A stretch of 64,000 bases of DNA from Bugula neritina (GCA_964035545.1 OZ037767.1:16861781-16925780); one strand, 5' to 3'; counted from the stretch's first letter, positions 6,001 through 47,300 are shown. Numbers and translations are program-made. Notes: generated by a model from the letters alone, not told the origin.

Positions 6001-6200
6001 AGAAAAAATTGCGCAGACCCAGGAGGACTCTATTCACCATTAGCCATGTACGCCGGGCTGCGCGAGAAATGTGAGTAAAAGTTGTAGTGGCAAGTAATTT
6101 TAGAGTTATATAACACAATGCAGGGGTCATGCATCTATCTTGTAAATAGGTTATATCTTATATCCTGTATATAGGTCACATGTCGTATATAGGTTACATC
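1..6200 (+). repeat. ~4.3-kb tandem duplication (1-~1890 repeats at 4313-~6200; third copy from ~49338)
   Basis: The same text recurs at an offset of 4312 (ORF-track paralogs 620 and 4932). Confidence 0.9.
1460..4004 (+). pseudogene. Decayed paralogous exons of the orphan gene (exon4', 3', 4' truncated, 1', 2', 3', 4', 5')
   Basis: Exon-1-like ATGCTTGGGCGACTGTGG at 2235 with the donor changed to TT (2297). Exon-3-like at 1629 has a frameshift and a lost donor. Exon-5-like at 3798-4004 is strongly diverged. Confidence 0.75.
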
Positions 6201-10000: not shown

Positions 10001-10779
10001 TAATTGACTGGTAATATTACAAACCGTGTTGAACTAAAATCGATGATCTTAGAGGATGCTCAAGTAGCTAAAGCCTGAATAAACAACAACGCTCATAGTA
10101 CGAAGTGAGAGCCTCATGGCCATTCTGATTCTTGCTCGTCGCTCAGTAGCCCGCTTTTTGTTGCAGACGACAGTCAGTCACGTGATAGCATTTTGTGCCC
10201 GTTCGTTATAGGAAGACAATTCTCAAAACTATCTGCGCGGACTAGTTATCTGCAGACTGCTTCATCCTGTTAACTATATTAATATAAATATTATATGCTA
10301 GAATTTCATGTTAATTTATATTGGTATTCATGTTCTAAATTTTATATATTTTACGGGTAAAAGCAGGTTGTCCTTTTTTGGAGTTAGGTTACTTTATGTA
10401 ATACCTACTGCAATTGGTAAAGTTATTTATTATTGAGTGTTTGCTAAAGAGAAAGTAGCAACATTTACATTATGTGATAGCTGATTATCCTTATCATTAT
10501 CATTATGATTATGATATTGATTATTAAAAATAAAATATTATTATTCATATTGTTATTTTCATTTATATTGATATAATTATTATAAAATTACATCTAACAA
10601 TAATTATAATGGCATTAGTTGAACAATTTCTGTTAACTTTGCCCTTAGAGTGACAGCCATACTAATACTAATACTAATAGTAATACTAATACTAATAGTA
10701 ATAGTAATAGTCATACTGTCATAGTAATACTGATACTGTGATAGTCATTTGGAAAACTGCTAAACCACAAATTAGGGAT

Positions 10780-13306
10780 TACGGACAGTGGTGTCATGGC
10801 GATCGGACGCTAAATTTTTATGATTTGAGTTCTTTACCAAATTTGGTTCAAAATAATACATAATTAGGGATAGCCTGTAGTTTAAAAATATTTTTCAAGC
10901 ATTTATAGGTACCAGAGTATTTACGAAATTATTCAAATAATTCAATTAATTTATACAATTTATTTTACACTGCCACCACCGTACCAAGATGACCAAAAGT
11001 AAAAAAATAGAATCTCGGCCAGTGAACTCTAAATCAAAACGGCTTGGAGATGGGCAGGCCGATAATAGGGGTAGCAACATTGATATCAGTAGTAACCATG
11101 AGGAAAGATGTGCCACATGCAATGAGATAGATTGCACTTTCCAAGGGACGAACAACAGGTAAATCAAGGTTCTCACTAAGTGGATTACCTGTGATCTCTG
11201 CAACCAATGGTACCATGGAATATGCCAGGACCTGCAGCCAGCTGATGTATCGTGTATAACTAAGTTGGCAGAGAAAGGCATGAGCTGGAAGTGCAGTGAC
11301 TGCAGAGATAAAACAGAAAACAGCCTATAAGGAGAGAGTCTAACACAGCCCATGACTCAAAAATCAACACAGCAGATTGACAACATAGAGAGGATAGTGA
11401 AGGAAATTGCTGAACAAAGCCATAAATTAAGTGAGATGGAACAGAAATGGTCTGATGTCGTCAAGCAAAATCTTGAGAACATTGACAAAAATAAACAGAT
11501 TGCTGCAGATGCAAAAACATTGATAGTAAAGAGTCACCAACTGAGGGAAGAAGAGAGTAGAAAGAGCAATGCTATCGTTACCGGGGTCACTGAAAAAGAT
11601 GGTAAAACCTCAATGGAGCAGATACAAGAACTAATGAGAATGGAATGTTTTACCAAAACCAACTCACCAACTCAGGCTTTTAGGCTAGGAAAAAAACAGA
11701 AAATGATGTACACAAACGTCCAATCAAGGTGAGATTTGAGAATGAGCGATCGAAATGGGAGTTCGTTAAAAGGTTCAACAATCAAATACTGAGAGAACAG
11801 GGTATTTACTGCAGACTTGATGAAAGCAAAGAAATCCGAAATCAACAATTCCAGCTGAAAAAGGAAGCTAACAGGCTTAGAGAAGAAAATACATCTATAG
11901 CATATCAAGTGAGAGACATGCAAATACAAGAAAAGCAAGCCTCGGGGGAATGGAAAGTGATGGAACAAGTCCAACAAAAGAGAGTGGCGGAATGCTGAAA
12001 GTATTCCTCGCCAACACTAGATCTGTTAAAGGTAAAATCACTGAACTGCAATTTCTCACCACAGATTCTGACATAATTTGTTTCACTGAAACACACCTAG
12101 ATGACACAATACCTAATAGCAGTATTCTACCAATCAAGAACAAAACAGTATTTCGTCGTGATAGCAACATTTGTGGGGGTGGAGTTATGAGGGCTGTATG
12201 TGACCGTTTAAATCCCAAACTAGTAGATCTTAGTGAGTATAGGGAAGAGGTGGTAGCAGTGAAAATTCAACCAAGAATGGTCATCTGCTGTTACTACAGA
12301 CCCTATGTACATCTCTCCAACACAGATGTTATAAATGATATTTTGGATTACCTACAAAGAGAGTATCAAAAGCACACTATTTTGTTTGTTGGGGACTTCC
12401 TCATTGGATGACTGTAAAAAATTTCAGCGAAACCTGGGCTCTCGTAGTACTTGGTTGGAAAAGTAGAAATTGTCATGCAACATCTTCAAGAGCAGGATAA
12501 TCAGCTTCAACTCTAAGAACGATACTCCCCAATACAAGCTTATTTGATTAGTGTTGGATCATGTTGACTCAACAAAATACCTTGGTGTAACATTGCAATC
12601 AGACTGTAAATTTGACCAGCACATCCTAAAGAAGGCATAAAAACATGCACTGTACTGGGGCCCCCAAAGGAGCAAAGCTTATTGACTAAAAAGCCCTCCG
12701 TCTCCCACACTTGGAATATGCCAGAGCAGCCGGAGACACATCCAGCAAGCACCATATGAGTATAATGGAAAATGTACAAGCAGATGCTCTGCGTTTTATC
12801 AGTAACACCAAAAAAAGAACTTACATTCTTGAGGAAATTAAAAAACTGTTTTTGGATTCACTTGATCTAAGAAGAAAAAACCGACGCATCAGCCTTCTTC
12901 TAAAAATGTTGTCTATAAGGAAAAACAACATCCAACTCTGAGTGCTGTCTATGATGATTTTCTGAATCAGCGGACCACAAGCACTGTGTAGACTGGATCT
13001 CAGGTTTCAGGACTCCCCAGATCAGTTAGAGCAAACAAGAATGGATATTTTTATAGTTTTCTCCCAAGAATGATAAGATATATGAGAATCAGCACTGATT
13101 GAGTGACTTTTCCAGAGCATTCAATAACTGTAAATCATACACAGACGAGCTGGTTAGCCTGTTTAGTTAATCTGCACAAGAATTTTAACATTATTTAAAA
13201 TACTGCTCAAGTACTGACAACTTATTTTCTATATGCGACAAAACCCTTCTTCCCTCTAGGGAGGTTCAGTGTGGGGATAACATCGGCAGACAGGTATCAA
13301 CAGGTA
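10780..13306 (+). mobile_element. Decayed non-LTR retrotransposon (CR1/L2-like LINE), copy A
   Basis: ORF1 from ATG 10989: PHD finger, coiled coil, RKSNAIVTGV and FRLGK..RPIKVRF motifs, with stops at 11160 and 11328 and a frameshift at 11690-11696. Overlapping ORF2 APE endonuclease (11950-12411: IICFTETHL, VFRRD..GGGV, YYRP, VGDF). The RT core is largely deleted; a C-terminal LEYA..ENVQ..ALRF..SLDLRRK remnant remains (12711-12941). Short CAGGTA-repeat tail. The 5' end is approximate. Confidence 0.85.
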
Positions 13307-14226
13307 TTTTTCCAACTAGTCTCAACATTGTTATTGTGGGTGCTCCTGATGATTTCTAATCAGTCAATATTGACCTATTAATTTTGATTTGCTTCTAATT
13401 TCACTGTACAAAGTAGGAGTAAATCAATATTCTAATTTATGGTGCCTGTTTATTTAATAAACTTTGTGACACCTTGACAAAACTTTGCACCTTTTCAAGT
13501 CTGTCAAGCCTAAAATATAATTATTGATGTTGTTAAGGTTTTGATAGTATCAATATGTGCTTTATGACATTGTAAATTAGCACTATAGCTAGATTAGTAT
13601 GTAGTACTAATTACCACTAGATAAGTTAGTACAAATTAGCACTATGACTAAGTGAATTAGTAATGATTTAAATATATTTGTAAAGACAGACAATACCTGC
13701 TAAAGATGTCAAATGAAATTTACCTTCTATTGTATGCTGAGATAAAAATCAAAGCTATGCTCACAACCTTGAAAATTGGATTGATTTTATGTATTTTGTT
13801 ATTTGTTTAGTATTTTAATAATAATTGTTCTTGAATTTAATAATACTAACAATTTTAAATATTGTAGCATTCTTGAAATAGTTCATTAATTTTATTCTTA
13901 AAATCTTGGAATTTCTTGTAAGAAATACTATCCAATGAGGACTGAGAAATTTCTTGTGCACATAATGATTATGATGTAATAAACCAATTGCTTCACATTT
14001 GATCTCGATTATAAGAAAATTCAGATTGCATGTGCCATCTTACTATTTTCTCATTCCTCACTTCTCCACAGTCAGGTTGGTTTTTACTTGCATATACTAG
14101 TGCTCTGAAGTCACAGTTTAAATGAAATAATTTTAAAAGATGCAACTTTTAATCAATTAAATAAAGGTTTTTGTGACAAACAGATATATGTAATTATATT
14201 AACAGTTTACCCAACATCCACCAGCC

Positions 14227-17200
14227 ATGCTTGGGCGACTGTGGAATTTCCTCACTGGTGAAGAAGATGCACCTCCCAGACAGACCAGGTCAGAGTTGTC
14301 TTCTTCCTAAACCACTGTTTTACAATGTAGTGAAATAATCAAAATCTTCAGTTATTTATGAGGAATAAACTAAGCTGCAGTTTAAACAAGCTAGTAGTTA
14401 GCATAAATTTCCATATTATAGCATGAGTACCTCTATATTTCATAGAGGTTTGGGGAAAGGGTTAAGACTTATATCCTAGCAAATAAAGCTTGTGTTCAGC
14501 TATGTATGTTGTCATGTGATCAAAATGCTAGTAAGACGCCACAAGTTAATGTAGACCTCTAGACCAACTCTCATATGACACTGCTCTATCTGGGAGTAAC
14601 ATAGTAAATATAACACTGCTGCAGGCTATGTATTGTTACATCCATTCTTTCTTCACTTCAGCTCTGCTCAAAGCAACTGCTCTGTTTTTACCAGCCATGG
14701 GAGCGTGCATCACGAAGAGAAGGCGAGTTCCACCAGTCTCGCAGAGCCCTTCTCTTGTGAGCAGAGGTAGGAAAGTTACACCGTATTAAATGGACTGTAA
14801 GGTATATACTGCATGCTGAAATCATTTCTGTTTTACCTCCATCTCTGTTCTACCTCCATCTCTGTTCGACCTCCATCTCTGTTCTACCTCCATCTCTGTT
14901 CTACCTCCATCTCTGTTCTACCTCCATTTCTGTTCTACCTCCATCTCTGTTCTACCTCCATTTCTGTTCTACCTCCACCTCTGTTCCACCTCCATCTCTG
15001 TTCTACCTCCACCTCTGTTCTACCTCTATCTCTGTTCTACCTCCATCTCTGTTCTACCTCCATCTCTGTTCTACCTCCATCTCTGTTCTACCTCCATCTC
15101 TGTTCTACCTCCATCTCTGTTCTACCTCCATCTCTGTTCTACCTCCATCTCTGTTCTACCTCCATCTCTGTTCTACCTCCATCTCTGTTCTACCTCCATC
15201 TCTGTTCTACCTCCATCTCTGTTCTACCTCCATCTCTGTTCGACCTCTATCTCTGTTCGACCTCCATGTCTGTTCTACCTCCACCTCTGTTCTACCTCCA
15301 TCTCTGTTCGACCTACATCTCTGTTCTACCTCCATCTCTGTTCTACCTCCATCTCTGTTCTACCTCCATCTCTGTTCTACCTCCATCTCTGTTCTACCTC
15401 CATCTCTGTTCTACCTCCATCTCTGTTCGACCTCCATCTCTGTTCTACCTCCATCTCTGTTCTACCTCCATCTCTGTTCGACCTCCATCTCTGTTCTACC
15501 TCCATCTCTGTTCTACCTCCATCTCTGTTCTACCTCCATCTCTGTTCTACCTCCATCTCTGTTCTTACAGTGAGACCTCCATCTTCCTCCGAGTCAGACC
15601 TGGATCTGAGGTGACTCTAGTCATCCCCCGGAGGAAGAAACCGCGCAGGCCCCGGCGGACTCCATTCACTATCAGCCCTGTTCGCCGGGCTGCGCGAGAG
15701 AGGTGAGTAAAATTTGTGGTGGCAAGTGGTTTTAGAGTTATATAACACAATGCAGGGGTCATTAATCTTGTATCTTGTATATAGGTTACATTTTGTATCC
15801 TGCGTGTAGGTCACATTTGGTATCCTGTATATAGGTCACATGTTGTATCCTGTATATAGGTCACATGTTGTATCCTGTATATAGGTCACATGTTGTATCC
15901 TGTATATAGGTCACATTTGATATCCTGTATGTAGGTCACATCTGCTCACCGATGTGGGCGTCGAGGCAGGCGTTGAGGTCTCCTGTCAGGCGACTCAGTG
16001 CATCCAGCGCTCTGCCTCTGTAGACATCAACTCCCAGAAGAGGTAAGAAAGTCGTGCTGTTAGTATACTGAGATACCTGTTAGTATACTGAGATACCTGT
16101 TAGTATACTGAGATACCTGTTAGTATACTGATAGTATACTGAGATACCTGTTAGTATACTGAGTTACCTGATAATACACTGAGATACCTGATAGTATACT
16201 GAGATACCTGTTAATATACTGAGATACCTGATAGTATACTGAGATACCTGTTAGTATACTGAGTTACCTGATAGTATACTGAGATACCTGATAGTATACT
16301 GAGATACCTGATAGTATACTGAGTTACCTGATAATACACTGAGATACCTGTTAGTATACTGAGATACCTGTTAATATACTGAGATAGCTGATAGTATACT
16401 GAGATACCTGTTAATATACTGAGATACCTGATAGTATACTGAGATACCTGTTAATATACTGAGATACCTGATAGTATACTGAGATACCTGTTAGTATACT
16501 GAGTTACCTGATAGTATACTGAGATACCTGTTAGTATACTGAGATACCTGTTAGTATACTGAGATACCTATTAGTATACTGATAGTATACATGTTTACAG
16601 TTCAGAACCCGGCTGCGTGGACAGATCTGTCCAGTGCGCCACCACCAGCCAGGCTCCAGCCTCCCAGCACAGTCGGGCAAGATCTCGTCTGGAGAGAAAG
16701 ACGTCCACTGCTGGCACCACACTGAGCAGCAGAAAGCCGAGCGGCAGCGGCGTTGCTGTACCACATGAAAGGGCGACATGTGGTCCTCAGGTGGTGTTAA
16801 GTCAGCAGCCTGTTCCAGTCACCTGTTCTCAGGGAAATGTGTTTGCTATGCAAATGGCATACCACCTTGGGCACCTGACAGGCCTGCTGACTACAGCACT
16901 GTAAGTAACCTCTCTTTAACACTTGTTGACACTTACCAGTGAGCTTACTTTCCTAAGTAATTTACTTTTGTGTCTTATTGAGTGTAAATGACACACTGCA
17001 GTATTGAGTTAACCCAGCAGACCCGTAGTGTAATGGTTAACCCTCCCGCTTGCAAGCCAGATGCTTCGGGTTCCACTCCCGGTGGCGGCAAAATTTTATA
17101 AGTTTATAATTTGTGACTTGCAGCAACACTAAGGAGTCAGAGAAGAGAAAGGTAGACGCCAGCACTTTAGTCTCAACACGCTATCCTTCTCTGAAACTAC

Positions 17201-23200: not shown

Positions 23201-24784
23201 AGCACCAGCCATGAGAGCTAGCTCAAGCAGAGGGTTGAATGGAGCGAGGTAGGACTAATACATGTACAGTTTTGGTGGGAACACGTATTTTATAATAAAA
23301 TAAGTCTATACTGGGGTATATGAAATGTGCTGTATAGTAAATTATTTACGTTATAAACAGAATCTGAATATATTTATATTATTATAATACAAACATGATC
23401 CAATTATATTCTGTGTTTCACAGCACTGTCACCCGATGCCTTTGCCGAAAGGAAGTTCCGGCAAGCTCGATGCTGAAGCGGTATAGCTCAGAGCATGTTT
23501 TTGACCTTGGCCCTTCTACTAAGAGATCGTCTGACACCTATTCGAGATCTAGTAGAAAAGGGTGAGCACATTTTCTCAACTGTGTTTGCGTTAAAGATTC
23601 AGAGCTGTGAATTATAATACTTATGCTCTCCCAATATATACCACTCTCAATATAGGTGTAATCCATTGGGTGGGTGTACCAATACTTATACTGAAGTTGA
23701 GTGTAAACTCGTTCATTCTATCATGCTCATGATATATTAGTTTGAGCAGACTACAACTACGTGTCTGTATTTTCAGCGCCAATCTTCTATGTTCATGTCA
23801 CGGGGAGCACACCGACTGTGAGGAAAGGTAAGAACTGTAGAGTTTGCGTTCTAATGAGGGATATGTGTTGCAATGGTTGTATTTCATTTCTACCACTGAA
23901 CCTGTTATTTGTAAAGTTTTCCAGCTGTTTGTCAGCATGCATTGAAGTCATTTCCTGTTGAGGTACAGCAGCTGAGTAGTTAGTATTGCTGTGAAATCTG
24001 AACATCAATAGAGTTGTAATACTTTAGTTTGATACCTTTTAGCACAATCTCTGAGAGTGAGTCACTGCAAGCCTGTGTTGGAAAGGGTAAGCAGCCGGCT
24101 AAGAAACCGCTTAAAAAGGGACCTCTTAAAAAGGGACCTCCTAAAAAAGGTTCTCTCACAAAAGAACCTCTTAAGAAGGGACCTCTCACAAAAGGACCTC
24201 TTAAGAAGGGACCTCTCAAAAACGGACCTCTTAAAAAAGGACCTCTTACAAAAGGACCTCTCACAAAAGGACCTCTTAATAAAGGACCTTTTAATAAAGG
24301 CCCTCTTACAAAAGGACCTCCTAAAAAGACACCGCTTAGAAAGTCATTAACCAATGGCAGAGCACCAGCTTCTAACCGCCAAGCTGGAGGTGTTGGAAAT
24401 CGTCTGGGGCCTCCAAAAAGAGGAGCTTTGAGCAAAGCACTAAAATTAGGGGCAAAGACTCCTGTAGCTCCTAAAAGAAATGCACCCAGTTCCGGGAGCA
24501 AGCTAGGCTCACGTGCCGCAGCGTCTAAAAAGAAGCAGTCATGTCCTGATGTGTTCACCAGGCTGTCAAGTACACCTCTGCGCGGCGCACCCAGGCGGCT
24601 GAACAGCACTCCAGCTGTCAAGCCACCAGTCAAGTCAAAAACGTCTCGGCCAGCAACCTTGCTTAGTCAGCAGTCCTCTTCTGCCCCACAGCGCAAGATG
24701 AGGCAGTTGAATGCCTCGAAAGCATCGGCTGATGATCTAGAGAAGCGTTGTCCAGTGCTGAAACAGCGCATCCGCAAATCATAG
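14227..24784 (+). CDS. Orphan multi-exon gene, copy A: ~1,576-aa Ser/Pro/Arg/Lys-rich, probably intrinsically disordered repeat protein (18 coding exons)
   Basis: Manual GT-AG splicing gives one stop-free frame. Exons: 14227-14288, 14662-14766, 15571-15702, 15935-16042, 16601-16900, 17124-17255, 17393-17560, 17779-17865, 19399-19557, 19904-21310, 21547-22071, 22277-22381, 22492-22764, 22871-22972, 23114-23248, 23424-23561, 23777-23827, 24043-24784 (total 4731 nt). Start context gccATG; begins MLGRLWNFLTGEEDAPPRQT, ends LKQRIRKS*. All 16 internal exon lengths are multiples of 3. Exons are GC-richer than introns. Track ORFs 16617, 17358, 19893, 21548, 22418 and 24029 are exons of this gene. An acceptor at 14205 implies an upstream non-coding exon. 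Confidence 0.85.
14827..15564. repeat. 17-bp minisatellite (CTGTTCTACCTCCATCT) x~43 in intron 2
   Basis: Direct reading. It explains the 17-aa-period ORF 14813-15706. Confidence 0.95.
15765..15941. repeat. 25-bp repeat (TGTATCCTGTATATAGGTCACATGT) x7 containing the exon-4 acceptor
   Basis: TAG|GT(C/T)ACAT occurs at 25-nt spacing, with AG ending at 15784, 15809, 15834, 15859, 15884, 15909 and 15934. Confidence 0.85.
16057..16590. repeat. 20-bp minisatellite (TAGTATACTGAGATACCTGT/A) x~26 in intron 4; x~11 at 62843-63076
   Basis: Direct reading. Confidence 0.95.
17017..17090 (+). mobile_element. tRNA-derived SINE head / pseudo-tRNA in intron 5 (copy at ~63504-63578)
   Basis: A-box TAGTGTAATGG, degenerate B-box GGTTCCACTCC, and a CTTGCAA anticodon-like loop (Ala-TGC-like). 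Stems pair poorly, and copy B has a broken B box. Confidence 0.6.
17917..19392. repeat. 30-bp minisatellite (CTGTGATATACTGTAYATAGTATTACTACT) x~49 in intron 8
   Basis: Direct reading. It explains ORFs 17916-19376 (-) and 19036-19395 (+). Confidence 0.95.
20260..21045 (+). repeat. Coding 78-bp (26-aa) repeat, LSSACSSxxSLxxSxGxPPSPGTPSx, ~10 copies in exon 10
   Basis: The periodicity is visible in the ORF 19893-21332 translation. Confidence 0.8.
21565..21965 (+). repeat. Coding repeat QADPVH / (K/E)AIQAD in exon 11
   Basis: Translation of ORF 21548-22075. Confidence 0.8.
24101..24340 (+). repeat. Coding 15-bp repeat, KGPL(K/T) x16 in the last coding exon
   Basis: Translation of ORF 24029-24784. 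Confidence 0.85.
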
Positions 24785-25007
24785 TCTCCCGAACTTCTCA
24801 GTCCAAGTTGTTTGGTGGTAGACTGTTGTTGGTTGCAGTTATCCCTGAGTAATGTGTCTCATTGTGCAGGTGGAATACAATGTATCTCATCCATTGATGT
24901 CTTTGATTCTGTTGGCTTGTACAGCTGCTACTTCTACTTTTACTGCTACCCCTATTACTACTGCTCACACTACTCAGTACACTAAGCCCGAGGATGACTG
25001 GATCATC

Positions 25008-25013
25008 AATAAA
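25008..25013 (+). promoter_or_regulatory. Candidate polyadenylation signal of the orphan gene
   Basis: AATAAA ~220 nt downstream of the stop codon. Confidence 0.35.
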
Positions 25014-28000
25014 AAGCTGGACTCTACAAATACAGCAAACCTCTGAACGACGTGAATGGTTCATCTACTAAGGGTGGATGCGCCTCGTCCCGTAGTGATG
25101 CTGTGGTTCACCAGGCACATCGAGACGGTCATCTGATTACTGGTTCTTGAGAAATTATCAGATAGCTAGATAGAGACACCAAACTCTGCAGCTTACCAAC
25201 ATTTCTCATTCTCTCCTCTTTCGGCACATTTTCTTTCGCTATTCAAACCTTTATTTCTTCTCCTCTTTGATGAAAGAATATAACTCAATGTGACTGTTGA
25301 TCTTTATTAGTAAAGGTAAACTGTTCTTTCTGTTTGTATTTGTTTATACTCTTGCTGTTGGTTACAAAATCAATATGTATTTTAGTCAATTGCAAGATCT
25401 GCTAGTTTACTAATATAAAGAGATATTTATTAAAGATTAGTGTGAGCAGCAATCTATTTTTCTGAACAAAAGCAGACCAGCTATGTTTTAAAAATATATA
25501 AATTGTTGTAGATTTATTTCGGAAGAATGAATATTACACTAAGGCTGGTATCCTCACATATTTGGCTGAGTTGAATGAAGATTATTCTCTGAAATAGTTT
25601 TGCATCTCAGACCTTTACTAGTTGGTTCCACTAAAATGCACAAAGAAGTATCGGCCAGCAACTTTGCTTAGTCAGCAGTCCCCTTCTGCCCCACAGCGCA
25701 CGGTGAGGCAGTTGAATGCCTTGAAAGCATCGGCTGCTGATTGAGAAAGGCGTTGTCTGGTGCTAGAAAAGCGCGTAGCAGAGTAGAGCTGGACTCTACA
25801 AATACAGCAAACTCTGAACGACGTGAATGGTTCATCTACTAAGGGTGGATGCGCCTCGTCCCGTAGTGATGCTGTGGTTTACCAGGCACATCAAGACGGT
25901 CATCTGATTACTGGTTCTTGAGAAATGATCAGATAGCTGGGTAGAGACACCAAACTCTGCAGCTTACCAACATTTCTCATTCTCTCCTCTTTCGGCACAT
26001 TTTCTTTCGCTATTCAAACCTTTAAGCCTTCTTTTCTCTGGTTGAGTTTGACTGATAATCTATTGGTAAAGGTAAGCTTTTCTCTAAATTTTAAAACATT
26101 ATTTTATGTTTGTATCTTTTTATACTATAGAAACGCCACCTCTTACTGCTGATTACAAAACATGCATTTTGGTCAACTGCAAGAATTGTTAACTCACAGA
26201 TATAAAGGGTTAAATACTAAAGCTTGATGTAAACAGCAATCCCAATTTTCTTTCCTAATAAAAGCAGGCCGACTGTGCATATTTTATTAATAAATTATAG
26301 ATTTTATTGTAGACTTATTTCGGAAGAATGAATATCATTCTAAGGCTGGTATCCTCACATATTTGGCTGAGTTGAATGAAGATTAATCTCTGGAATATTT
26401 TCACACCTCAGGAGTTTACAGAAGAAACAAACCTTCTGTTAAAAACTTCTTTCTGTCGGGCAAACGTCTGAACATTCATCACTCGAGATCACAATTGCAC
26501 CTGAACTTCTGAATTTCAAGCTGACTGCAATACTGACTCACGCTTGGCAGTGTTCAGGTAAGTTTTTTTTAATATTTCTTTTTTCTAATTATCTACATCG
26601 TGACTGAGTGAAATTCATTTGAGATGGTTTTTTTCTAATTTTTTTGGGCCACTTAGGATTACAAGCTTATAGAAAATATACTAAGTTTAATATTTATGCA
26701 CACTTTTCATCATCATTACCTATGCTGTTATTCAATCTTGTAGATGGTACAAATCCTTTTTGGCTGGTAAAACACTACTATATGTTTATTGGATGAGCAA
26801 CATATTCCTCATACTCTACTCTGTATGTTGACATTCACACATCTACATCTTAGTAAACTGAAGAGTAGTTTATTAGTGGATCTTCTTAGAACTCCTCTAC
26901 AATAAATACTCGGCTGGACACACCATGTCTTTCACTGTTGGTCAGATGAGTCTGAAACTCTATATAGAGGTGAGTCCTTCTTCTACATTCTCTTAGCATT
27001 TTGTTTCTTGACTTCCTATAATATCTGGTTAGAAGGTCTCTCAGCATGTTTCTGTCAGTGTTTTTAAATGCATACTTTTTAACTTTTCTCACCTATCATG
27101 CATAGAACGTTCCTTTAGAGGTTGTTGATACAATTTTTAGAGAATAGTTTAATTTCTGCACCTAATAGACATATTAAATATTATAGATGGTGATATCACT
27201 TGTTGGCTGGTACAATACTACATTGTTAGTGGATTCTCAACTCTGCATCTCTCCTGGATTTCAAGTAGACGAAACAGTATTCTATTTCTCAAAACATTTA
27301 CTAGATTGCATTTCTCAATGAGCCAACAGAACATGTCTCCAATTCTTATTTTCAAATTTGGGGATGGAAGAATTTAGGCTGGACTTAAGTCAGATGTGGA
27401 TCATCTTACTAACATAGAACATTCTATTCTACTAGAGCAATGGTGAGTTTGTGAAATGCTTCTAAAAACTGTGATCTGCTGTGAGGACAAACTTGTGTGA
27501 GCATTCGATGGCAATAGTTGATATAATTCTTTCAAGAGTTAAAGTTGCTGTGGTAAATGATTATTAATAGGTTATGGTGGTTTTTACAGAGTCTCTCACT
27601 GAATCTATGTTGAGGACAATATCACTTGTTCAACTTGTACAATCACTGATAGATGATTCCACTTTCTTCTCCTTGTAAATGTCTGGATTCTATAAATAGA
27701 CTGACACAGATATCTGCTGGACTCAGAGTCTCTCTACTAACAACTCTATTCAGGGTTTAACTTCTTCCTATCTTGTTATAATATAGGTGAGTTTATGTAG
27801 TAGCAGAAGGCACAATTTAGCTTCTCTCATTTCCATTATCATTGCACAATGGCCAGGCTGTATATAAGTTTGACTATGAAGATGCATTATAAGTTCTGTT
27901 AGAAACTCTTTACAGATATTTATATTTTGGGCAGGCACTTCAGTAAAACAATATTAAGTTAGTTAGTATCAAACAGGTTTAAAAGTAGCTTATATAGTTT

Positions 28001-28668
28001 GAGTTGTCTACAGTATTGCTATTTCATCGAAGCTTATGCTTCAACATTCTTATATGACTTTTTAGTTTCTGCACACATCGGACAAGATTTTCATCTTGGT
28101 TTGACAGAAATGGGCTGAAAGAAACACATTTATATTCTGCAGGGAATTTTTTTTTCTGTTCTGCAATCTTCTGAATATTTATCATTCGAGATCACAATTG
28201 CGCCTAAACTTCCAAATTTACAAGTATCACTTGTTCAACTTGATAGATGATGGTTATAAAAGCTGATGATTCCTCTTTCTTTTCTCAAACATCTGCTACT
28301 CAATATCATAATTATGCTGCACTTTCTTTCTGGATTCTATAAATAGATACAGATATCTGCTAGTCTCAGAGTCTCTCCACTGACAACTCTATTCAGAGTT
28401 TAACTTCTTCATATTCTGTTATAATATAGGTGAGTTTATGTAGTAGCAGAAGGCACTATTTAGTTATTCTAATTTCTATTGCATGGTGGCAGGGCATATC
28501 TATAAATTCAATTATGGTTATGTATTATAAGTTCTATTAGAAACTCTTTATAGATATTTATATTTTGCGCAGGCACTTCAATAATACAATATTAAGGTTT
28601 TATGGCATATCAAACAGCTTTAAAAGTAGTTTAAAGTGTCTACAATATTGTTACTTCATCAAAACGTA

Positions 28669-28997
28669 TACCAAAACATTCTTATATAACTTTTAGTTTC
28701 TGCACACATCAGACAAGATTTTCATCTTGGTTTGACAGAAATGGGCTGAAAGAAACACATTTATATTCTGCAGGGAATTTTTTTTTCTGTTCTGCAATCT
28801 TCTGAATATTTATCATTTGTGATCTCGAATGATAAACTTCCAAATTACAAGTAGACTTAGTAACGCTACAGAACTTACTCAAACTTCCACCTGCACTGGC
28901 TCAGGTAAATGTAGTTTTTTCAGCCATTTCTGTCAAACCAGATGAAATCTTGTCTGATGAGTGCAGAAACTATAAGTTTTTTAAGAATGTTTTGGTA
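28669..28997. repeat. ~80-bp inverted repeat (28669-28751 / 28918-28997)
   Basis: The right arm is the reverse complement of the left arm, with a few mismatches and 1-nt indels. Confidence 0.85.
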
Positions 28998-30967
28998 ATT
29001 TTTTGGGTTAATTAGAATTAGAACCTTTGAAATGAGATGCTAAAATAAAATACGTTAAAAATTATGTTTTATCATCACCTGTATTCTATAATAATTATAT
29101 AACATATTTTTGTAGATGCGGTACAAAATCCTGTTAGGCTGATAAAAACACTTTCACATTTTTATTGGACTACAATTATTTCTGCACTTTCATCCTACTG
29201 TGTTCAAGCACGAAAGGTAAGCTTGATTGAAAAGTTATTTTTCTATTATATGCGCCATGACATGACTGAGTTGATGCAGTTTTGGCACTTCTTGTTAATA
29301 TAGATCAATGTTCAGTGGAGTGGAGGGGGGAATACTAAATTAATTATTCAAACTAGCTTCTAATCATTAGTTGTAGCCAGTTGGGAACTCTTGTAGGTGA
29401 TACAAAGCCTTGGCTGGCTGGTAAAAACAAACAAGATCTTCTCTTTGGTATGTCACAATACTGGATGGGCTGAAAGCAACACTTTAATGTTCTGCTGAGA
29501 ATTTTGTCATAACTTCCACATGCTTTCTTCAAGTGTTCATCACTTAAGAGCATGACACATTCCAATTTCAAGTCAATAAACATTTCATGTCTACAGTTCT
29601 TAAGATATGCAGAACTTTAAAACTTTGTTGAGGGTTGAAAGGTAAATTCCCTAAATTGTTGTTTCTGGCTGAAAGTTTGTTGTTGCAATAATTATTTTGA
29701 GTTCTTTTAATTGCTCAAATATATAGCCAAGCTTGAAAATGCTGAAACAAAATGTACAAAAGTTCCGTTAATCATCATTGCCTATACTGTTAATCAATCT
29801 TGTAGATGATACAAACCCTGTAAGACTGGTAAAACACTTCCAGATGTGCATTAGATGAGCAACATATTCCTCATTCTCTACTCTGTATGTTGACATTCAC
29901 ACATCTACATCTTGGTAAACTGAAGAGTAGTTTATTAGTGGATCTTCTTAGAACTCCTCTACAATAAATACCTGGCTGGACACACCATGTCTTTCACTGT
30001 TGATTAGATGACTCCAAAACTCTATGTAGAGGTGAGTCCTTTTTCTACATTTTCTTGAAATTTTACTTCTTGACTTCCAAATATCTGATTAGAAGAACTT
30101 AGTCGTTTTCGTTTTTAGATGCTATCCTGTAAAGAACAGTTTAATTTCTGCACCTAACCTTTTTTCAAGAATGGTGTAATTTTTGCTTATGACTGTCATT
30201 AAATCTTTGTAGTTGGCTGGTACAAACTTAGAACTCTTCTACAACAAATACTTGGCTGGACACACCATGTCTTTCACTGTTGGTCACTAATCAGACGACT
30301 CTAAAACTTCATAATTATAAAGGTGAATCCTTGTTCTACATTTTCACAAAATTCTGCTCCTTGACTTCCAATTGTATCTGACTAGAAGGTCTCAGTTAAA
30401 GTATTGTTTTTGTCGGTTTTTGGGTGTAAATTTTCTATAGAAAATTTTAATCTTTGCACCTAAAAATTTTTGAAGTAATTTCTGCACATGACTGTGATTA
30501 AACTTTGTAGATGGTGAGATCACTTGTTGGCTGGTAAAACACTTCTACGTGTTTATTGGAAGATCTGATCCACTCTGCAAATTCACTTCTGGTGCATCTC
30601 TCCTTGATTTCAAGTAAACAGTAACTCTACTTCTCAGAACATCTCCAAGACTGTTTTTCTTAAATAATTACCCAACACAAATATTTGGAGTGGATCAAGT
30701 GAAACACACTTCTAATGTAATTCAAACTTCAGTTTCTCTATTTTGGAGCTGAATGAATCCCTTCTTGGCTTCAACTGAACACTAGATGTGGATCAGCTGA
30801 CCATAACTTGGTAGACTCCATTCTACTAGAGTAATGGTGAGTTTATGTAATACTTCTATACTATCAGTTTGTATCAGATTATGGAACTCAAGTGGCATGC
30901 TTACAGTACGTGTGTCTAGTTTAGTGTTTGTATGCTGAGCTATATAGTAAAATAGTGTAGTAAAATA

Positions 30968-31074
30968 TATAGTAAAATATATAGTACAATAATATTGTAC
31001 TATCTATTTTACTATAATATATTTTACTATAATATATTATATTATAGTAAAATATATTATAGTAAAATAGATAG
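30968..31074. repeat. Overlapping AT-rich palindromes
   Basis: Perfect 36-bp arms at 31000-31035 and 31039-31074. A second palindrome is centred at 30992. Confidence 0.8.
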
Positions 31075-32808
31075 AAAAATATATTATGGTAAAATGTATA
31101 GTAAAATAGTGTAAACTTTGTCTTCTGGTTTCAGCATTTCGCACTAAAATTTCTATGGAATTTACAAAACAGTTTTTAGAGCTTGGAAACCTTCTAGAAG
31201 CTTTTTACTAATATTAGGCTTCTAATACACCAATTAGGTTTACAATAGGCATACAATATATGTATTGCTTTCAGAATATTGCTATTTTAGCAAAACTCCT
31301 CTCAGATTCTTTTTATTTGGCTTTTTAGCTTCTGCACACATTCCACAAGATCTTCATCTTGACATGTCATAACACTTGCTGGGCTGAAAGAAACGTTTAT
31401 ATGCTGGTGAAAACTTCTTCCTTTCTGTTCTGCAAACTGGTTGAAGAAGATAACTCAATGTGACTGGTGATCTTTACTGGTAAAGGTAAGCTTTTCTCTC
31501 TGTTTGTATTTGTTTATACTCTAATTGCTGTTGATTACAAAATGATTATACATTTTAGTCAATTGCAAGGTCTGCTTATAATACACTATTATATAGGTTT
31601 AATTACCAGAGATTCATGTGAACAGCAATTCGTTTTCTTTCTGAACAGAAGCAGACCACCTATGTTATTGAAATATATATATTGTTGTAGAACTATTTAA
31701 GAAGAATGAGTATCACACTAAGGCTGGTATCCTCACATATTTGGCTGAGTTGAATGAAGATTTATTCTCTGGGATATTTTCACACCTCAGAACTTTACAG
31801 AACAAACAAATCTCCATGTTCTGCTGAGAACTTTTTTCTTTCTCTTGTGCTTTGTGCTTCCAAATATTTATCACTTGAGATCACAATTGCACCTGAACTT
31901 CTGAATCTACAAGTAGACTGAGCCAGAGTCTACAGCACTTACTCAGAATAATATATCCAAAACTTCCACCTGCACTTCTTTGAGCTCTAAAGTAAGCTTC
32001 TGGTTTCTATTATCTATCTTAGTGAAGGTTTAGCATAAATTCTTGTAAACTCTCTTAGTTCATCAGACACGCCTATTTTTTAAATGTTTTGTAAATATTT
32101 GAAATAGGTTTTCAGAGTGACCTACACCGTTTATGAATGTTTGTTTGTTTCAGCTTATGAAACATTGTTTCCCTATAGAGTTTTCAAACTTATTGATTGG
32201 ATCGTTTGATCTCCCCGTGCTATGGTGGTGACATAATTTATTTGGCAGATGGAGAATGTATTTCTAATGTCATCTCCTGCTCACAGAGTTTCCTCTCAAA
32301 CCTTTAACCAAAACCAAAAGTGAGTTATTGGAAATTGGCATTTTGAGCAGTTCACTTATAGTTCAGTTGAAATGTTTTATTGTGAGAATTTTTATTAAAA
32401 TTGATGGGTTTTCGTAGATTTCCCACATCATGTGGAGACAAACTGAACCGTAGTTAATAGTGATGTTACTGCATGCAGTACTGTGGACTATTGGAGTTGT
32501 GGTACCACCTTGTGGGCCTCGGAATCTGGGAGCATATCTGAGCAGTAACACTAGAGATGGTAATAATGCATAATATACTATATTCCCTACTGTTACAATT
32601 TTAACATGTGTGGCATTTGAATTTGTTTGTGTCTCTCCAAGTGTTTAGGAAGAGGCAGCTGGTCAAATCTATTAGTTTAAGATGTGTAATGTATCTATTA
32701 TTAGATAGTAATATAAGATATGTATTACATAATAACATAATGTATCTATCATTAGATGATGTAATGGCTTTTTATGTTCTCTGTTTGTAACCAGGTACAC
32801 AGTGTTTT

Positions 32809-33047
32809 CATGGTGATACTTTGTATACATGTGTTGTCATGGTGATACTAAGTATACATCTGTTGTCATGGTGATACTGTGTATACATGTGTTGTCATGG
32901 TGATACTAAGTATACATGTGTTGTCATGGTGATACTCTGTATACATCTGTCGTCATGGTGATACTTTGTATGCATGTGTTGTCATGGTGATACTATGTAT
33001 ACATGTGTTGTCATGGTGATACTATGTGTACATGTGTTGTCATGGTA
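32809..33047. repeat. 29-bp minisatellite (CATGGTGATACTNNGTATACATGTGTTGT) x~8
   Basis: Direct reading. Confidence 0.9.
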
Positions 33048-35094
33048 ATGAAAGTTTGTTTCTAGAAAGCAGGTACTAGCCAGGACCACCAGCTGACAGG
33101 TGAAGGTAGCAGTAGTAGTCAACAGACGTAGTTTGGTCACATATATTAATACTTCCTGTTACATCTTGCGACAGTGTAAATAAAATACACTGTGGTATAT
33201 TTAGCACTCGGTGAAATTTTAGAGTTTTTAGTTTAAATGTGTGACCAGACAATCTTTACAATGATTTTTGTTAATTTATAATTTTCAGCTGCTTTTTAAT
33301 TTACAACATTTATACAATGATTGGGAAAGTCACAGCAAATTCAGCATAAATTCTGATAATTGGTACCAATTTAGCCGTCAATGAGTTAGCTAAGCGAAAC
33401 TCTACAACCTTATACTTTCCAACTTGCGTAGCTGTTGAGATGCTGAGGGAATCTGATGCATGATTGTAGTTAATGTCTGTTGGAATGTAGATAGGCAACT
33501 CCTATATTGACTATTCACAAAAGTAAAATGACGGTTTGATCTAGGAAAGTAACTGTAGAATAATATTATGATGATATGTTCTTCAGTCATAAACAGTTAA
33601 CAGTGTGTTGTATTTCAGTGACTCCCTGTTACAGTCAGCAACTATTATAGTAGGCTCATATCAACATCTGTCTCTCTACAGCAGCTGTACATAGTATAAT
33701 CTGAGTGTATTTATTACCTTGCAGAGATGGGAAATACCTTTTGGTGAGGTAAAGAATTTTACTTTCTAATATGTTACAGTAACTCTCTGAAGGTATTTTA
33801 TTGTAACACGTTATTGTTTAAAGCTGAAACTCAACCATTTCCATAACTAATTGAGAAATCTTATATGTAGATAAAATTCTTATTTGAAATTATCTGAAAC
33901 ATTCTTTATGTGGATATAAAAATATTATTGCATTTACTCAAATAATCAGGTGTTTGAGTTTTGAATATATAACAGCTAATTATTTATTTACATGTAAGTA
34001 TGAAGCTGACCGCCATTTACTTGGAGTCATCTCACATGACACAAGTTTGGTTATCTTGATTGTCAACTTTCATGAGTTGCTTTTTAGAGGACCAGCCAGA
34101 AATTATCGCTCGTAGGCGCAGATGACTCAAGTGTGAGGCTATTCAAGTACCTTGTAGCCAGAGGAGGGTCACATGACACAAGCAGTAAGTCTCAAGCAGA
34201 GCATTTTGACATATGAAGGAGTTACCTTCTCTAATTCTTTTACAATTACTCCAAAATAACTACTCTCCTTGCACTTTTATAGTTGGTAGTGATCACCAAG
34301 CAGAGGTTGATTTAATTCCCGTTATTTATATACTGAGTTTTAGCAATTATTGAATAACTTTAAATTTTTAGTCATGCACTGCAGGAAAATCAACCAATCG
34401 GTTTACGGAGCTGAAACAGTTTATGAAATGAGATCAAAACCTTTAATTGGCCATTTGTTGACAGCTCTAAAATATCCAACCTGGCAAGTGAACTTTTCCC
34501 CAGATAATCTCTCTGCACTGGACAGTCACACAGTACACAGTGCAAACTCTGTGAGCATCAACCACCTCTGACAGGGACAGATAACTTCTAATCAGAGGTA
34601 AATCAGGCTGTTGGTTTTCCTGTTATTGATATAATAACTTTCGTGAATTCACATTTGCCCCGCAGATAGTTAAGGCACTACTTATCTTAGAACTGTCAGC
34701 ATTAACATTACTATCAGCTATAATAGTGAAGATCTATTTAGGCTGAGCTAAATTCTATTGTAGAAAATTCCGCTGCAAATTTTATCACAGATCTCTCATA
34801 TAATAGTTTCTTCTGGAGTTCACCAGAAAACTGTTGCTCTCAATGCTCTCTACCATATCTGTAGACATCAGTGTGAAATGGCCCTCAGCCCTGGTGATAT
34901 ATGCATCAATACTAAACACTTGCTTCATAAACATTAACATAATTTTCTACATGTTATTTGTTGGCTAAAATGCAACATTAAGGTCATTAATTGATTTTTG
35001 GTTAGAATGTAATATTATGATTGCTAATTGACTTTAAAGTTTGTAAATATTAATTTATATGGCAGATAATTTTTTTATCTTATAAGATTGTGAA

Positions 35095-44379: not shown

Positions 44380-47300
44380 CCAAGAGTTTACTGAACAACC
44401 ACCAACCATATTTGGGCAAAATGGAGATTTTTCTCTAGTGATGAGGATACACCTCCGAGTGAGACAAGGTATAAATTGTTCTCTCTCTAAACCTGTGAAG
44501 TGCCATGTTCAACATAATAAAAATCTCCATTCATTCAAGATGGATGAGATGCTATACATTAAATAAGATGCAGCTCAAGCCAGCGAGTATTGGTTATAAA
44601 GTTTCACATAGTATGAGTGCTCCTATATTTAATAAAGGTTCAGGGAAGTGATTTTAATTTATACTTTAACAAATAAAATTGCCATTCAATTGTGTATGAT
44701 GTCACCATGTGACCAAAATGTTGGTAAGACACCACAGGTGGATGTGGATGTAAAGTTACAAATCAACTCCTATATAAGGTACTGTACTGCTTCAGGTCCT
44801 ACCAGCACTTGAAGTGTTGCCAGTCGTTTAGCGTAAAGGAACTATAAGTGCCACTAATTTCATGGAGTCATTCACTTGTGAACAAAAGTAAAGAAGTGAC
44901 ACTGCATCGCATATGCACAAATTTATGAAATATGAAATATATACAAGTATATGCTGAAAATCAGGTATGTCTCTCTCATTCAACATCTCTATTTTTATGC
45001 TGCGCTACCTCTTTTGCTCTCAAAGGAAAAACTAGCTCAAAGATGGACACTTTTGAAAGTAGGGCTTTAAAAAATTGAAGATATCAACAAAAATGAAAAA
45101 ACCACTCACAAAATCATCTCTCAAGCAAAGACTTTATAAAAAAATTGTAATAGAGCTATATCGCTTGCTAGAAAAAATAATAAAATAAAGCAAAATGATA
45201 AGTGCTAAGATAATGAGAAATGAAGAGACGTTTTTGTCAAAAAACATCTAAAATTTAATTGATGCCTACTACCTACAAGTAGACTTGGTTTTAAAAGCAA
45301 TTACAAAGCTGTGTTGCTTTTATGCTCGTGAACCTTAGTTTCAATTTTTAACGTGCAAGAGTCGAGAAAAGAAGAATGCTAATATCATGCTGATTTATTT
45401 CATCTTTCTTTAAAACTAGAAAGAGTTTCACTAAAACTGTCACCGAATTACAAGTTACAGAAGTTTATGGAAAAAAGAATATAAAAGAAAAACCCATTAC
45501 CCTGAAAAAAATATTTTTAGCAGTTTAACATCTGGTTACCAACCCCAGCTCTATTCTAACTTCTAGCTCAACCATGTCAGACTTAAAGTTTGCCACTCAT
45601 GCAGCTATGAGCTCTGCCTCTCTACAATTCAGCAATCAGTCTGGCTCAGAGAATGCTAACAGCCTTGAGCTCAGCTTCAGTGTAAACTGGCAGTTTTGCT
45701 GTGACCTTGGCTTAAATGTGGTTTTTACTGCTACGAATATAACTATACCAGCAGTTTACCGAACACCTCCTAGTCATGGTTGGACGGTTGGAGAGTTTCC
45801 TCTTTAGTGATGAGGATACACCTCCAAGTGAGACAAGGTAAAAGTTTTTTCTTTTTGAACCTGTCTTGTGCCATATATAAATAATGAAAAAAAAATCAAT
45901 TTATTTAGGATGGATGAAATGCCATGCATTGAACAATCGGCAACTAAATCTAGCTATAGAAACAGTTATAAAGTTTCACATAGCATGAGCACTTCCACAT
46001 TAGGTTTAAGGAAATGGTTATAAACTATATTTAAAAAAATAAACTTGCCATTCAACCGCGTATCATGTCATCATGTGACCAAAATACTCGTAAGACACAC
46101 GTTAATGTCAAGTTCTGAGCTAACTCCCATATAAGATAGTGTATTTTGGAGCACCCATAGCAAATATAACACTGCTGAATGCTAAATATTGCAACTTTCT
46201 TTCTCTCTTCACTTCAGCTCAGCTCAGCTCAAAGCGCCTGCTCTGTAGTTACCAGGCCTGGGAGTGTGCATCACTCTTTAGAAAACAGGAGCCGAGTTTG
46301 ACATAACTCACAGAACCCTTCTTTTGTGAGCAGAAAAAGGAACATTACACAGTATTATAAATATTCATTGCTAATGACAAAGGTATAAAGTGTATGCTAA
46401 GGATCCTCTTAGTTCTGCATTCATTTCTGTTTTTACGTTGTAGTTGTATCCCGTACACAGGCCATATCTTCTATCATGTATTTAGGTCACATGTTAATTT
46501 AGGTCACATCTGCTCACCAATGTGGACGTCGAGGCAGGTGTTAGGGTTTCCTGTCAGACGTGCACTGATGAGGCAACTTAGTGAATCCAACTTCTTGTCT
46601 CTGAAAAATCAACTCCTTGAAGAGGTAAGAAAATTGCGGTGATAGTGTACTGAGCTGCCTGTTGATATACTGAGATGGTATACTGTTCTTACAGTAAAAC
46701 CTCGATTTTACTTAGAGTGAAACCTAGCTCTGAGTGTACTTTAGTCATCCCACAGAGAAAAAATTGCGCAGACCTAAGAGGACTCCATTCACCATTAGCC
46801 ATGTACGCCGGGCTGCGCGAGAAATGGCAGTAAAAGTTGTAGTGGCAAGTAGTTTTAGAGTTATATAACACAATGCAGGGGTCATTCATCTTGTATTTTG
46901 TATATAGGTTATATCTTGCATTCTGTATATAGGTCACATGTTGTATATAGGTCACATCTGCTTGCCAATGTGGACGTCGAAGCAGGCCTATGGCTTCACA
47001 TTTGATCTCGATTCGTCACTAAGAGAATTCAGATTGCGTGCCGTCTTACTTTTACTAGTAGTATCATATCGATATTTTCTAATTCTTTGCTTCTCCACAG
47101 TCAGGTTGGTTTTTACTTGCATATACTAGTGCTCTGAAGTCACAGTTTAAATGAAATAATTTTAAAAGATGCGACGTCTAATCAATTAAATAAAGGTTTT
47201 TGTGATGAACAGATATATGTAATTATATCAACAGTTTACCCTACATCCACCAGCCATGCTTGGGCGACTGTGGAATTTTCTCACTGGTGATAAAGATGCA

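Follow-up and report, generated by a model that had tools for sequence, protein, structure and literature searches.

In this study, we describe an array of exon-like segments downstream of a protein-coding gene on chromosome 3 (C3) of Bugula neritina (UK lineage), contained in a stretch of 64,000 nucleotides that we refer to as the window. Judged from its sequence, the array is very probably spliced RNA, either a non-coding RNA or an extension of the 3'UTR of the gene. We put at about an even chance the more specific reading that 14 of the segments (E1–E14) constitute a spliced non-coding unit on the + strand, continuous with the stop-containing exon, and hence a long 3' extension, with many introns, of the gene transcript. 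The upstream gene is bryozoan-specific, fast-evolving and lineage-specific, and its stop codon is located at 24782–24784. E1–E14 extend from 25512 to 31991 on the + strand, have AG/GT borders throughout, with TAG or CAG acceptors and GTAAG- or GTGAG-type donors, and are separated by introns of 150–280 nt (Table 1). An additional donor at 25315|25316 closes the stop-containing exon 531 nt past the stop and is followed by 14 acceptor/donor pairs on the same strand, which places the splice signals beyond the distance of 50–55 nt past the stop codon that is required of a 3'UTR-intron target of NMD. The same gene and array are also present in the Virginia assembly, which is ~20% diverged. In the genome studied here an array follows each of three tandem copies of the gene, with 12, 14 and 21 exons, and its placement 531 nt past the stop is identical in 3/3 paralogues and in the Virginia lineage.

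A first-pass annotation of this DNA had proposed 15–19 non-coding exons. The 14 segments E1–E14 were upheld by our comparisons and the segments further downstream (E15–E20) were not, their sites being lost or deleted in paralogues: the acceptor AG of E15 is lost in array 2, and E16 and E19 both fall in stretches that are missing from array 3. The donor of E14 is conserved and therefore at least one further exon must come after it. A speculative candidate for the terminal exon (33066–33200) is 97–100% identical in arrays 2 and 3 in the UK paralogue comparison, and its hexamer is kept. That the array might be the 5'UTR of the next downstream gene is unlikely, as no array precedes the first copy of that gene, whereas one is found 0.5 kb past the stop in each of the three copies of the upstream gene.

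Table 1. Positions in the window of the exons, candidate exons and conserved element of the array
Feature	Position	Strand	Remarks
E0 (3'UTR part of stop-containing exon)	24785..25315	+	Ends in conserved donor
Ultraconserved element (~115 nt)	25042..25157	+	Second copy in E1 at about 25813–25928
E1	25512..26071	+	Chimeric exon; internal duplication and comparison across arrays
E2	26313..26557	+	Conserved in array and Virginia comparisons
E3	26744..26969	+	Paralogue of E10
E4	27187..27442	+	Paralogue of E12
E5	27590..27786	+	Array and lineage comparison
E6	28066..28429	+	E7-type start fused to E5-type end
E7	28697..28904	+	Array and lineage comparison
E8	29116..29216	+	101 nt; array comparison
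E9	29397..29641	+	Array comparison
E10	29806..30031	+	Paralogue of E3
E11	30213..30322	+	Array and lineage comparison
E12	30511..30836	+	Paralogue of E4; array comparison
E13	31329..31485	+	End and donor homologous to ends of E0 and E1
E14	31691..31991	+	Start homologous to E1/E2; donor conserved
Candidate terminal exon (speculative)	33066..33200	+	Conserved acceptor, then AATAAA at 33179
E15–E20 (further segments of the first-pass annotation)	32249..34598	+	Unsupported as exons

The main evidence for splicing comes from the comparison of splice sites between copies, and it bears out the earlier proposal that splice sites are retained as the segment bodies diverge and contain stops. Many recent duplicates are included in the splice-site counts, and their kinship is ignored in the statistics; on this basis AG and GT are kept at 47 of 47 acceptor and 50 of 50 donor homologues (three arrays, this genome), splice dinucleotides are conserved in 27 of 27 cases across paralogous arrays, with 65–80% of control AG/GT kept in both paralogous copies, and AG/GT is kept at all of the ~24 Virginia homologues and at 25 of 25 array-1 sites that could be aligned to Virginia, as against 44–68% for the controls. 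The UK–Virginia meta-profile peaks at the AG and at G|GTRAG, and the E0 donor, which reads AAG|GTAAAC here and GTAAGC in other copies, is retained by arrays 2 and 3 as well as by Virginia. Scoring against a shuffled background, as proposed in the first-pass annotation, favoured the donors but not the acceptors: strong donors (at least 10 bits with a generic PWM) number 11 on the + strand and 0 on the − strand, compared with 1.3 ± 1.2 in shuffles, whereas hexamer counts of TTGTAG/TTTTAG-type acceptors alone gave no enrichment over chance. The array acceptors belong to these short types and have no extended pyrimidine tract; with a generic PWM for vertebrate-style acceptors they score poorly, and this PWM is non-discriminating in this AT-rich genome. 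Because duplication inflates the number of strong donors, the comparative test across copies is the decisive one, and it supports the view that the splice sites are under purifying selection.

The same comparison can be held against the idea that the array is a neutral relic, that is one or two pseudo-exon/intron units that were recently duplicated, are unexpressed and have inherited their splice-like motifs. Much of the apparent regularity does stem from duplication. However, control AG/GT have decayed in 20–56% of cases and those at splice sites in none, the exons are better conserved than the introns, and the architecture is kept in the Virginia lineage, which is about 0.2–0.3 substitutions per site off, and we regard a relic as improbable.

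Selection acts more weakly on the exon bodies. Between the UK and Virginia sequences, exons are 81% identical and introns 72%, with 93% and 76% alignable, respectively, and among paralogues the identities are 92.9–93.3% for exons versus 89.2–90.7% for introns. Stops are present in every frame of the UK exons, with the exception of one frame of the 101-nt E8, and the Virginia array exons have multiple stops in all frames. The lengths of exons E2–E14 are never a multiple of three, and neither are those of the indels in the best-conserved exon-start element. Virginia does not retain the sole notable ORF (E4, 47 codons). A codon-periodicity test of the exons had no power, as periodicity was absent from the CDS control too. 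Together with the splice-site comparison, the all-frame stops and frame-breaking indels back the earlier suggestion that selection acts on splicing rather than coding, and they support a non-coding array in which the splice sites and, to a lesser degree, the exon bodies are selected rather than a reading frame. In addition, we counted 22 exonic copies of GGCTG against 2 intronic ones; all exons but E5 carry it (13 of 14), and E5 has a GACTGA variant, so that a GGCUGR-type motif is present once or twice in every exon. These motifs are probably splicing enhancers or protein-binding sites.

Alignments within the window support the conclusion that the array is duplication-built. The paralog families claimed from first inspection are real, and repeats of 89–96% identity were recovered (26706–27005 with 29768–30067, 89%; 25274–25352 with 31444–31522, 91%; 28060–28200 with 28691–28831, 96%), and 25459, 26260 and 31638 form one repeat family. 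E1 is composed of an E2/E14-type start (25512–25640), a decayed duplicate of the end of the CDS (25641–25774), a copy of the 3'UTR (25787–26040) and an exon-end module with donor. Both copies of gene sequence in this first segment had been recognized previously and were confirmed here: the CDS end at 24636–24769, comprising the ~45 last codons, is 87% identical to 25641–25774, and the 3'UTR at 25038–25269 is 95% identical to 25809–26040. There are no E1-type exons in array 2, three in array 3 and at least three in Virginia, where they take the form of ~1.1-kb exons. The array may have been built, and may still be remodelled, by unequal crossing-over inside it, and its exon number varies not only among the tandem copies but has expanded separately in the Virginia lineage.

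The decayed codons in E1 could also be taken as a sign that the array is a decayed protein-coding gene or, more generally, that it is derived from coding or transposon sequence, an outcome that had been considered in the first-pass annotation and that we checked and found not to be so. The copy in E1 is the only coding-derived sequence in the array, which resembles nothing else in the window, not even the remaining exons of the gene, and a derivation from those exons was rejected for this reason. The multiple stops per frame in both lineages, the exon lengths of E2–E14 and the loss of the E4 ORF in Virginia also argue against a decayed gene. A transposon is contradicted by the genome matches, since every scored match falls inside one of the three C3 arrays (16.888–17.003 Mb) and there are no dispersed copies; the array sequences are locus-specific, being located behind three copies of this gene only, and their sole dispersed part is an AT-rich minisatellite at 30940–31115. 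We consider either origin barely credible.

A further proposal was that the array is a small-RNA precursor, which would make it a host for intronic snoRNAs or miRNAs of the SNORD116/IPW-A or C19MC type, or a source of piRNAs or siRNAs. Tandem non-coding exons with introns of this length resemble the SNORD116-hosting IPW-A array (PMC4742849), and one intron contains a long AT-rich palindrome (30940–31115, fold z −6.3). This palindrome is, however, the genome-wide minisatellite mentioned above and finds no aligned counterpart in the Virginia sequence examined. No Rfam match was obtained at gathering scores and only chance-level ones at E≤5–10, a scan of all introns gave C/D box pairs in 0 introns, and neither the fold z-scores nor a hairpin scan pointed to an excess in the exons or remaining introns. 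Thus the tandem non-coding exons of such a host are present and a conserved snoRNA or miRNA per intron is not, and it is the exons that are better conserved than the introns. These results weaken the proposal, and we think it very unlikely.

The 3'UTR (24785–25315) is 94–97% identical among paralogues and ~88% identical to Virginia, and it is conserved as strongly as the CDS. It contains the ultraconserved element, which is ~97% identical between UK and Virginia with flanks at ~80%, and of which each UK array has 1–3 copies and Virginia four or more; the element has no Rfam match and is without excess structure (fold z −0.5). These features bear on the main rival to a 3' extension, according to which the array is a separate multi-exon lncRNA that starts within 24785–25315, for instance just downstream of the element as a candidate promoter, and the mRNA of the gene ends at the AATAAA at 25008. 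All three UK paralogues retain this hexamer, and therefore the mRNA may normally end there. The element precedes the first donor by 160–270 nt and has been copied along with every E1-type exon, and the array has no conserved ORF and has splice sites under purifying selection, with constraint focused on splice-related motifs as in human lincRNAs (PMC4245815, PMC4338330). However, the hexamer at 25008 reads AATCAA in Virginia, where neither AATAAA nor ATTAAA is found from the stop to the first array donor, which also weakens the earlier suggestion of alternative polyadenylation at this position, and the element-bearing E1-type exons keep their acceptors and so behave as internal rather than first exons. 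As a point against the 3' extension, AATAAA is also found inside E3, E9 and E10. We regard an independent lncRNA as possible, if somewhat doubtful.

Three observations tie the array to the gene and are in agreement with a spliced 3' extension, namely the 531-nt placement in every copy, the chimera of E1 with the 3' end of the gene and the conservation of the E0 donor everywhere. According to this model, the E0 donor would splice to E1 and thereby join the array to the coding mRNA. Every splicing event past the stop would then leave an exon-junction mark and display the repeated motif, and selection would keep the splice sites, the short exon-start element and the GGCUGR motif, once or twice in each exon. 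The extension might in this way serve as a post-transcriptional control module, acting through NMD decay or through binding, localisation or translation control, with the dose of the module set by exon number. It is conceivable, and we put it forward tentatively, that a coding mRNA with 12–21 spliced non-coding exons represents a platform, tunable through copy number, of exon-junction complexes and protein-binding sites; with similar reserve, we suggest that this platform would set decay, localisation or translation of the gene, its array size changing per paralogue and lineage. What we infer from the DNA is that the array is transcribed, that E0 and E1 are spliced together on the coding mRNA and that the extension may function in NMD or binding, and the role for NMD is transferred from vertebrate and plant rules, which may not be those of bryozoans. 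For an mRNA, 12 to 21 introns past the stop codon would be extreme.

Protein-word searches for transcript-derived ORFs found none: the last coding exon matched nothing but the annotated Virginia protein, and the last 70 residues of the gene gave no match. One sequencing run contains the stretch; its reads cover the spacers as well as the exons, and the run is therefore DNA. A read joint from 29612 to 25246, considered as splicing, was rejected, as it is the internal duplication junction of array 3. Transcriptome alignments were the main source of the Ensembl Rapid Release annotation of this assembly, GCA_964035545.1 (PMC11480708), and public RNA-seq exists for the species.

If the array is spliced onto the coding mRNA, it would form an extreme 3'UTR with an order of magnitude more post-stop introns than usual. 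Being conserved and at the same time copy-number-variable, such a 3'UTR would provide a natural system for the study of 3'UTR splicing outside vertebrates, and it would allow one to ask if lophotrochozoans possess EJC-linked NMD. If the array is instead an independent lncRNA, it would be a clean non-model case of a non-coding gene that can be recognized from DNA alone via selection on its splice sites. The array would also illustrate how exon arrays grow by tandem duplication.

Known mRNAs with 3'UTR introns have one or a few of them. An intron situated more than 50 nt past the stop triggers NMD via the exon junction complex in vertebrates and plants (PMC3711448), and natural NMD targets with 3'UTR introns have been described in zebrafish (PMC7310861). 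As in these mRNAs, the junctions here are well over 50 nt past the stop, the first being at 531 nt; however, here there would be 12–21 tandemly duplicated introns, joined to the coding mRNA as our model predicts. With multi-exonic intergenic lncRNAs, in which splice-related motifs carry concentrated constraint, the array shares the lack of an ORF, weakly constrained bodies, strong splice sites and exon-edge motifs (PMC4245815, PMC4338330). It differs from them in its physical fusion to a coding gene at the 3' end and in consisting of tandem paralogous exons. The IPW-A/SNHG14 array is located downstream of a protein-coding gene as well, SNURF-SNRPN. It is a tandemly repeated array of non-protein-coding exons hosting SNORD116 (PMC4742849) and evolves by birth-and-death and conversion (PMC8789076, PMC12429941). 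The array described here likewise consists of tandem repeated non-coding exons, but it is without intron-encoded snoRNAs, its exons rather than its introns are better conserved, and lineage and scale are unrelated. Lastly, in Firre, with its RRD repeats, and NORAD, with its repeated PUMILIO-binding units, function is thought to reside in a repeated short element. While the repeats here are whole exon–intron units and not within-exon repeats, the array resembles both in repeating a short motif, of the GGCUGR type, one or two times per exon.

In the Darwin Tree of Life assembly of the bryozoan Bugula neritina (GCA_964035545.1, here the UK lineage; PMC11480708), which comprises 216.0 Mb with nine large chromosomes, an own-genome search located three copies of the 3' end of the bryozoan-specific gene on chromosome 3 (C3; identities 100%, 96% and 89%). 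Two targeted array searches of this genome, in which every first-look candidate was scored, found the exon-like array only behind these three copies. Array 1, in the window, consists of 14 segments placed from sequence (E1-E14); of the arrays behind the two tandem paralogues, array 2 has 12 exons and lacks E1, and array 3 has 21 because its E1-E6-type block is repeated. The single sequencing run that contains this stretch has coverage over spacers and exons alike and is therefore DNA; its joint 29612>25246 coincides with the duplication junction inside array 3 and is not an array-1 variant. The intron after E5 in array 2 holds a 7.5-kb LTR retrotransposon (53% GC), whose pol-like ORF of 1455 codons runs on the - strand; the splice sites on either side are intact. 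The ~48-50-kb tandem unit also includes a further gene upstream of the orphan gene, with identical strong donors in its two copies and ORFs with weak sub-threshold Sec10_N matches, and an LRR_8 match (E 2.5e-12) lies in the first-exon region of gene copy 2.

Coordinates of the features discussed (window positions, unless G000, the window's own genome, or L024, Virginia contig VXIV02000218.1, is named)
Feature	Position	Strand	Remark
Window	G000:C3:16861781-16925780
E0 donor	25315|25316	+	ends stop-containing exon
Array 1 (E1-E14)	25512-31991	+
Candidate terminal exon	acceptor 33066, AATAAA 33179		conserved acceptor
Array 2	C3:16936980-16950853
Array 3	C3:16993571-17003281
LTR retrotransposon, array 2	G000:C3:16938941-16946414
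AATAAA after the stop	25008
~115-nt 3'UTR element	25042-25157; copy ~25813-25928
Its copies in L024	about 11030-11150, 12380-12500, 13720-13840, 15065-15185
Differing CDS end	24650-24784; L024 10646-10780
~324-nt Virginia segment	L024 11152-11476
Inverted repeat	28652-28721 and 28945-29014		flanks E7
Minisatellite	30940-31115		E12-E13 intron
29-nt tandem repeat	32795-33046		directly upstream of candidate terminal exon
Further gene of tandem unit	1029-11729, 44965-59492	+	strong donors 3935/48961 and 11729/59492
First-exon region, gene copy 2	61871-62539

The exons of array 1 are 101-560 nt and the introns 147-492 nt long, with acceptors that are all TAG or CAG after T-rich hexamers and donors that are all GTAAG/GTGAG-like. 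Stops occur in all three frames of every exon, except that the 101-nt E8 has one frame without them, and none of the lengths of E2 to E14 is divisible by three. Protein-word searches with the gene's last coding exon found no transcript-derived ORFs. E1 is a chimera, composed of the start of the E2/E14 type, a decayed copy (87%) of the gene's last ~45 codons, a stretch copied from the 3'UTR (95%) and an exon-end/donor module identical in kind to the ends of E13 and of E0, the gene's stop-containing exon. The repeat families described in a first-pass annotation were confirmed, and comparative evidence supports its view of a non-coding array built by duplication. That annotation had counted 15-19 exons; while E1-E14 could be placed, its further segments E15-E20 are not supported, since array 2 has lost the AG of E15 and array 3 lacks both E16 and E19. 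Since the E14 donor is conserved, another exon must follow, for which we propose, speculatively, the candidate terminal exon in the table. The tandem repeat next to it (8.7 copies, 90% matches) varies in copy number among the three paralogous loci.

Scoring against a shuffled background, proposed in the first-pass annotation, gave a divided result. Using a generic donor matrix, 11 strong donors (at least 10 bits) were found on the + strand of the array and 0 on the - strand, compared with 1.3 +/- 1.2 in dinucleotide shuffles and 0-5 in five control stretches of the window. However, acceptor-like hexamers were not enriched in the array and a vertebrate-style acceptor model fitted its acceptors poorly, so that motif counts by themselves are weak evidence; duplication also inflates them. 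Among the three arrays, AG is kept in 47/47 acceptor homologues and GT in 50/50 donor homologues. In global alignments the array-1 splice sites are intact in both other copies at 13/13 AG and 13/14 GT, the one miss being an alignment slip of one base, since the homologue listing shows this donor intact; for ordinary AG/GT the figures are 65-68% in introns and 77-80% in exons. At the most generous control rate, and ignoring shared ancestry, the chance of such retention is ~0.8^27 = 0.002. Identity is slightly higher in exon bodies (92.9-93.3%) than in introns (89.2-90.7%).

The last coding exon, used in a word search, matched one protein, EB796_001983, from the 2020 Virginia draft assembly of B. 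neritina (PMC7576161), a sibling-species complex (cited in PMC7576161). On its contig L024 the gene is present at ~80% nucleotide identity and an array of the same type lies behind it, with three or more E1-type exons of ~1.1 kb, each with a copy of the CDS end and 3'UTR, and then E2-, E3-, E4-, E5-, E7- and E11-type exons. In a tree of E3/E10-type exons the lineages are ~0.2-0.3 substitutions per site apart and the copies cluster by lineage, which points to independent duplication or conversion in each. The Virginia matches have AG in 14/14 acceptors and GT followed by A/G-A-G/A in 11/11 donors; all alignable array-1 sites are conserved (acceptors 13/13, donors 12/12), compared with 44-50% of control AG/GT in introns and 66-68% in exons, the chance at the generous rate being roughly 0.68^25 = 7e-5. 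Conservation by position peaks exactly at AG and G|GTRAG. Exons are 93% alignable with 81% identity and introns 76% alignable with 72% identity, and the Virginia exons contain many stops in each frame. These alignments provide good evidence that the array sites are real, selected splice sites and that the exons are weakly constrained and non-coding; selection on splicing, as first proposed, is thus upheld, with splice AG/GT kept in all arrays and in Virginia while controls decay. Taken together, the comparisons indicate a real array that is non-coding, specific to this locus and built by duplication, with splice sites under purifying selection, and it is very probably transcribed and spliced.

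The array had also been tied to the gene. In agreement with this, all four loci (three UK copies and Virginia) retain the E0 donor, conservation of the 3'UTR up to this donor matches that of the CDS, and the E1-type exons, made from the gene's own 3' end, behave as internal exons because their acceptors are retained. Furthermore, no AATAAA/ATTAAA lies in the Virginia sequence from the stop to the first array donor, and the AATAAA that was read as a polyadenylation signal is AATCAA in all Virginia copies. These features favour continuity and count against an independent lncRNA; however, the three UK paralogues all retain AATAAA at this place, which speaks against continuity, and the ~115-nt element directly downstream could be the promoter of such an lncRNA, an origin that we consider possible but rather unlikely. 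We prefer to read the array as a spliced 3' extension of the gene, and would give this about an even chance. The ~115-nt element is ~97% identical between UK and Virginia, with flanks at ~80%, and is copied into every E1-type exon; it neither matched Rfam nor folded to excess, and might serve as a promoter or as an RNA element regulating in cis. The stop codon itself differs: 44 codons ahead of the UK stop, the Virginia gene model has a terminating TGA in place of the CGG of the UK copies, with a 10-nt deletion after it. Over the final 440 nt of the UK CDS, substitutions show no excess at third positions (17/14/17 by codon position), so the protein appears to be under hardly any constraint in its C-terminal tail. 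The Virginia 3'UTR and each Virginia E1-type exon, at the matching place, contain ~324 nt without UK counterpart, with GTAAGT-like and CAG-like borders, which may represent either an insertion or an additional intron of the 3'UTR.

Seven exon types share a ~40-nt start element containing a TTGGCTGGTAAAAACAC-like sequence, which is kept across paralogues and lineages and whose indels break any frame. GGCTG occurs 22 times in 3.5 kb of exons vs 2 times in 3.0 kb of introns and is present in 13/14 exons, E5 having a GACTGA variant, while its complement is absent from exons; this pattern would fit an exonic splicing enhancer or a repeated protein-binding site. Around E7 lies an inverted repeat (70 nt, 83% complementary) whose downstream arm duplicates the acceptor region of E7 in the opposite orientation and is present in array 3 too; base pairing of the arms might promote back-splicing of E7 or its skipping. 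Neither exons nor introns have unusual folding energies (z -2.6 to +2.0), except for the intron bearing an AT-rich palindromic minisatellite of 12-27-nt units, a near-perfect long hairpin (z -6.3) with related arrays on most chromosomes.

Rfam gave no match at gathering thresholds, and otherwise chance-level matches only, and no intron of the array has a C box/D box pair; on these results, together with the folding, the suggested small-RNA host or precursor is unsupported. A function in NMD or localisation might be envisaged by analogy with what has been established for vertebrates and plants (PMC3711448, PMC7310861). The closest architectural analogue is the IPW-A/SNORD116 exon array (PMC4742849), although its defining feature is intronic small RNAs, none of which were found in the Bugula array. 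The selection pattern of the array is the same as that described for human lincRNAs (PMC4245815, PMC4338330).
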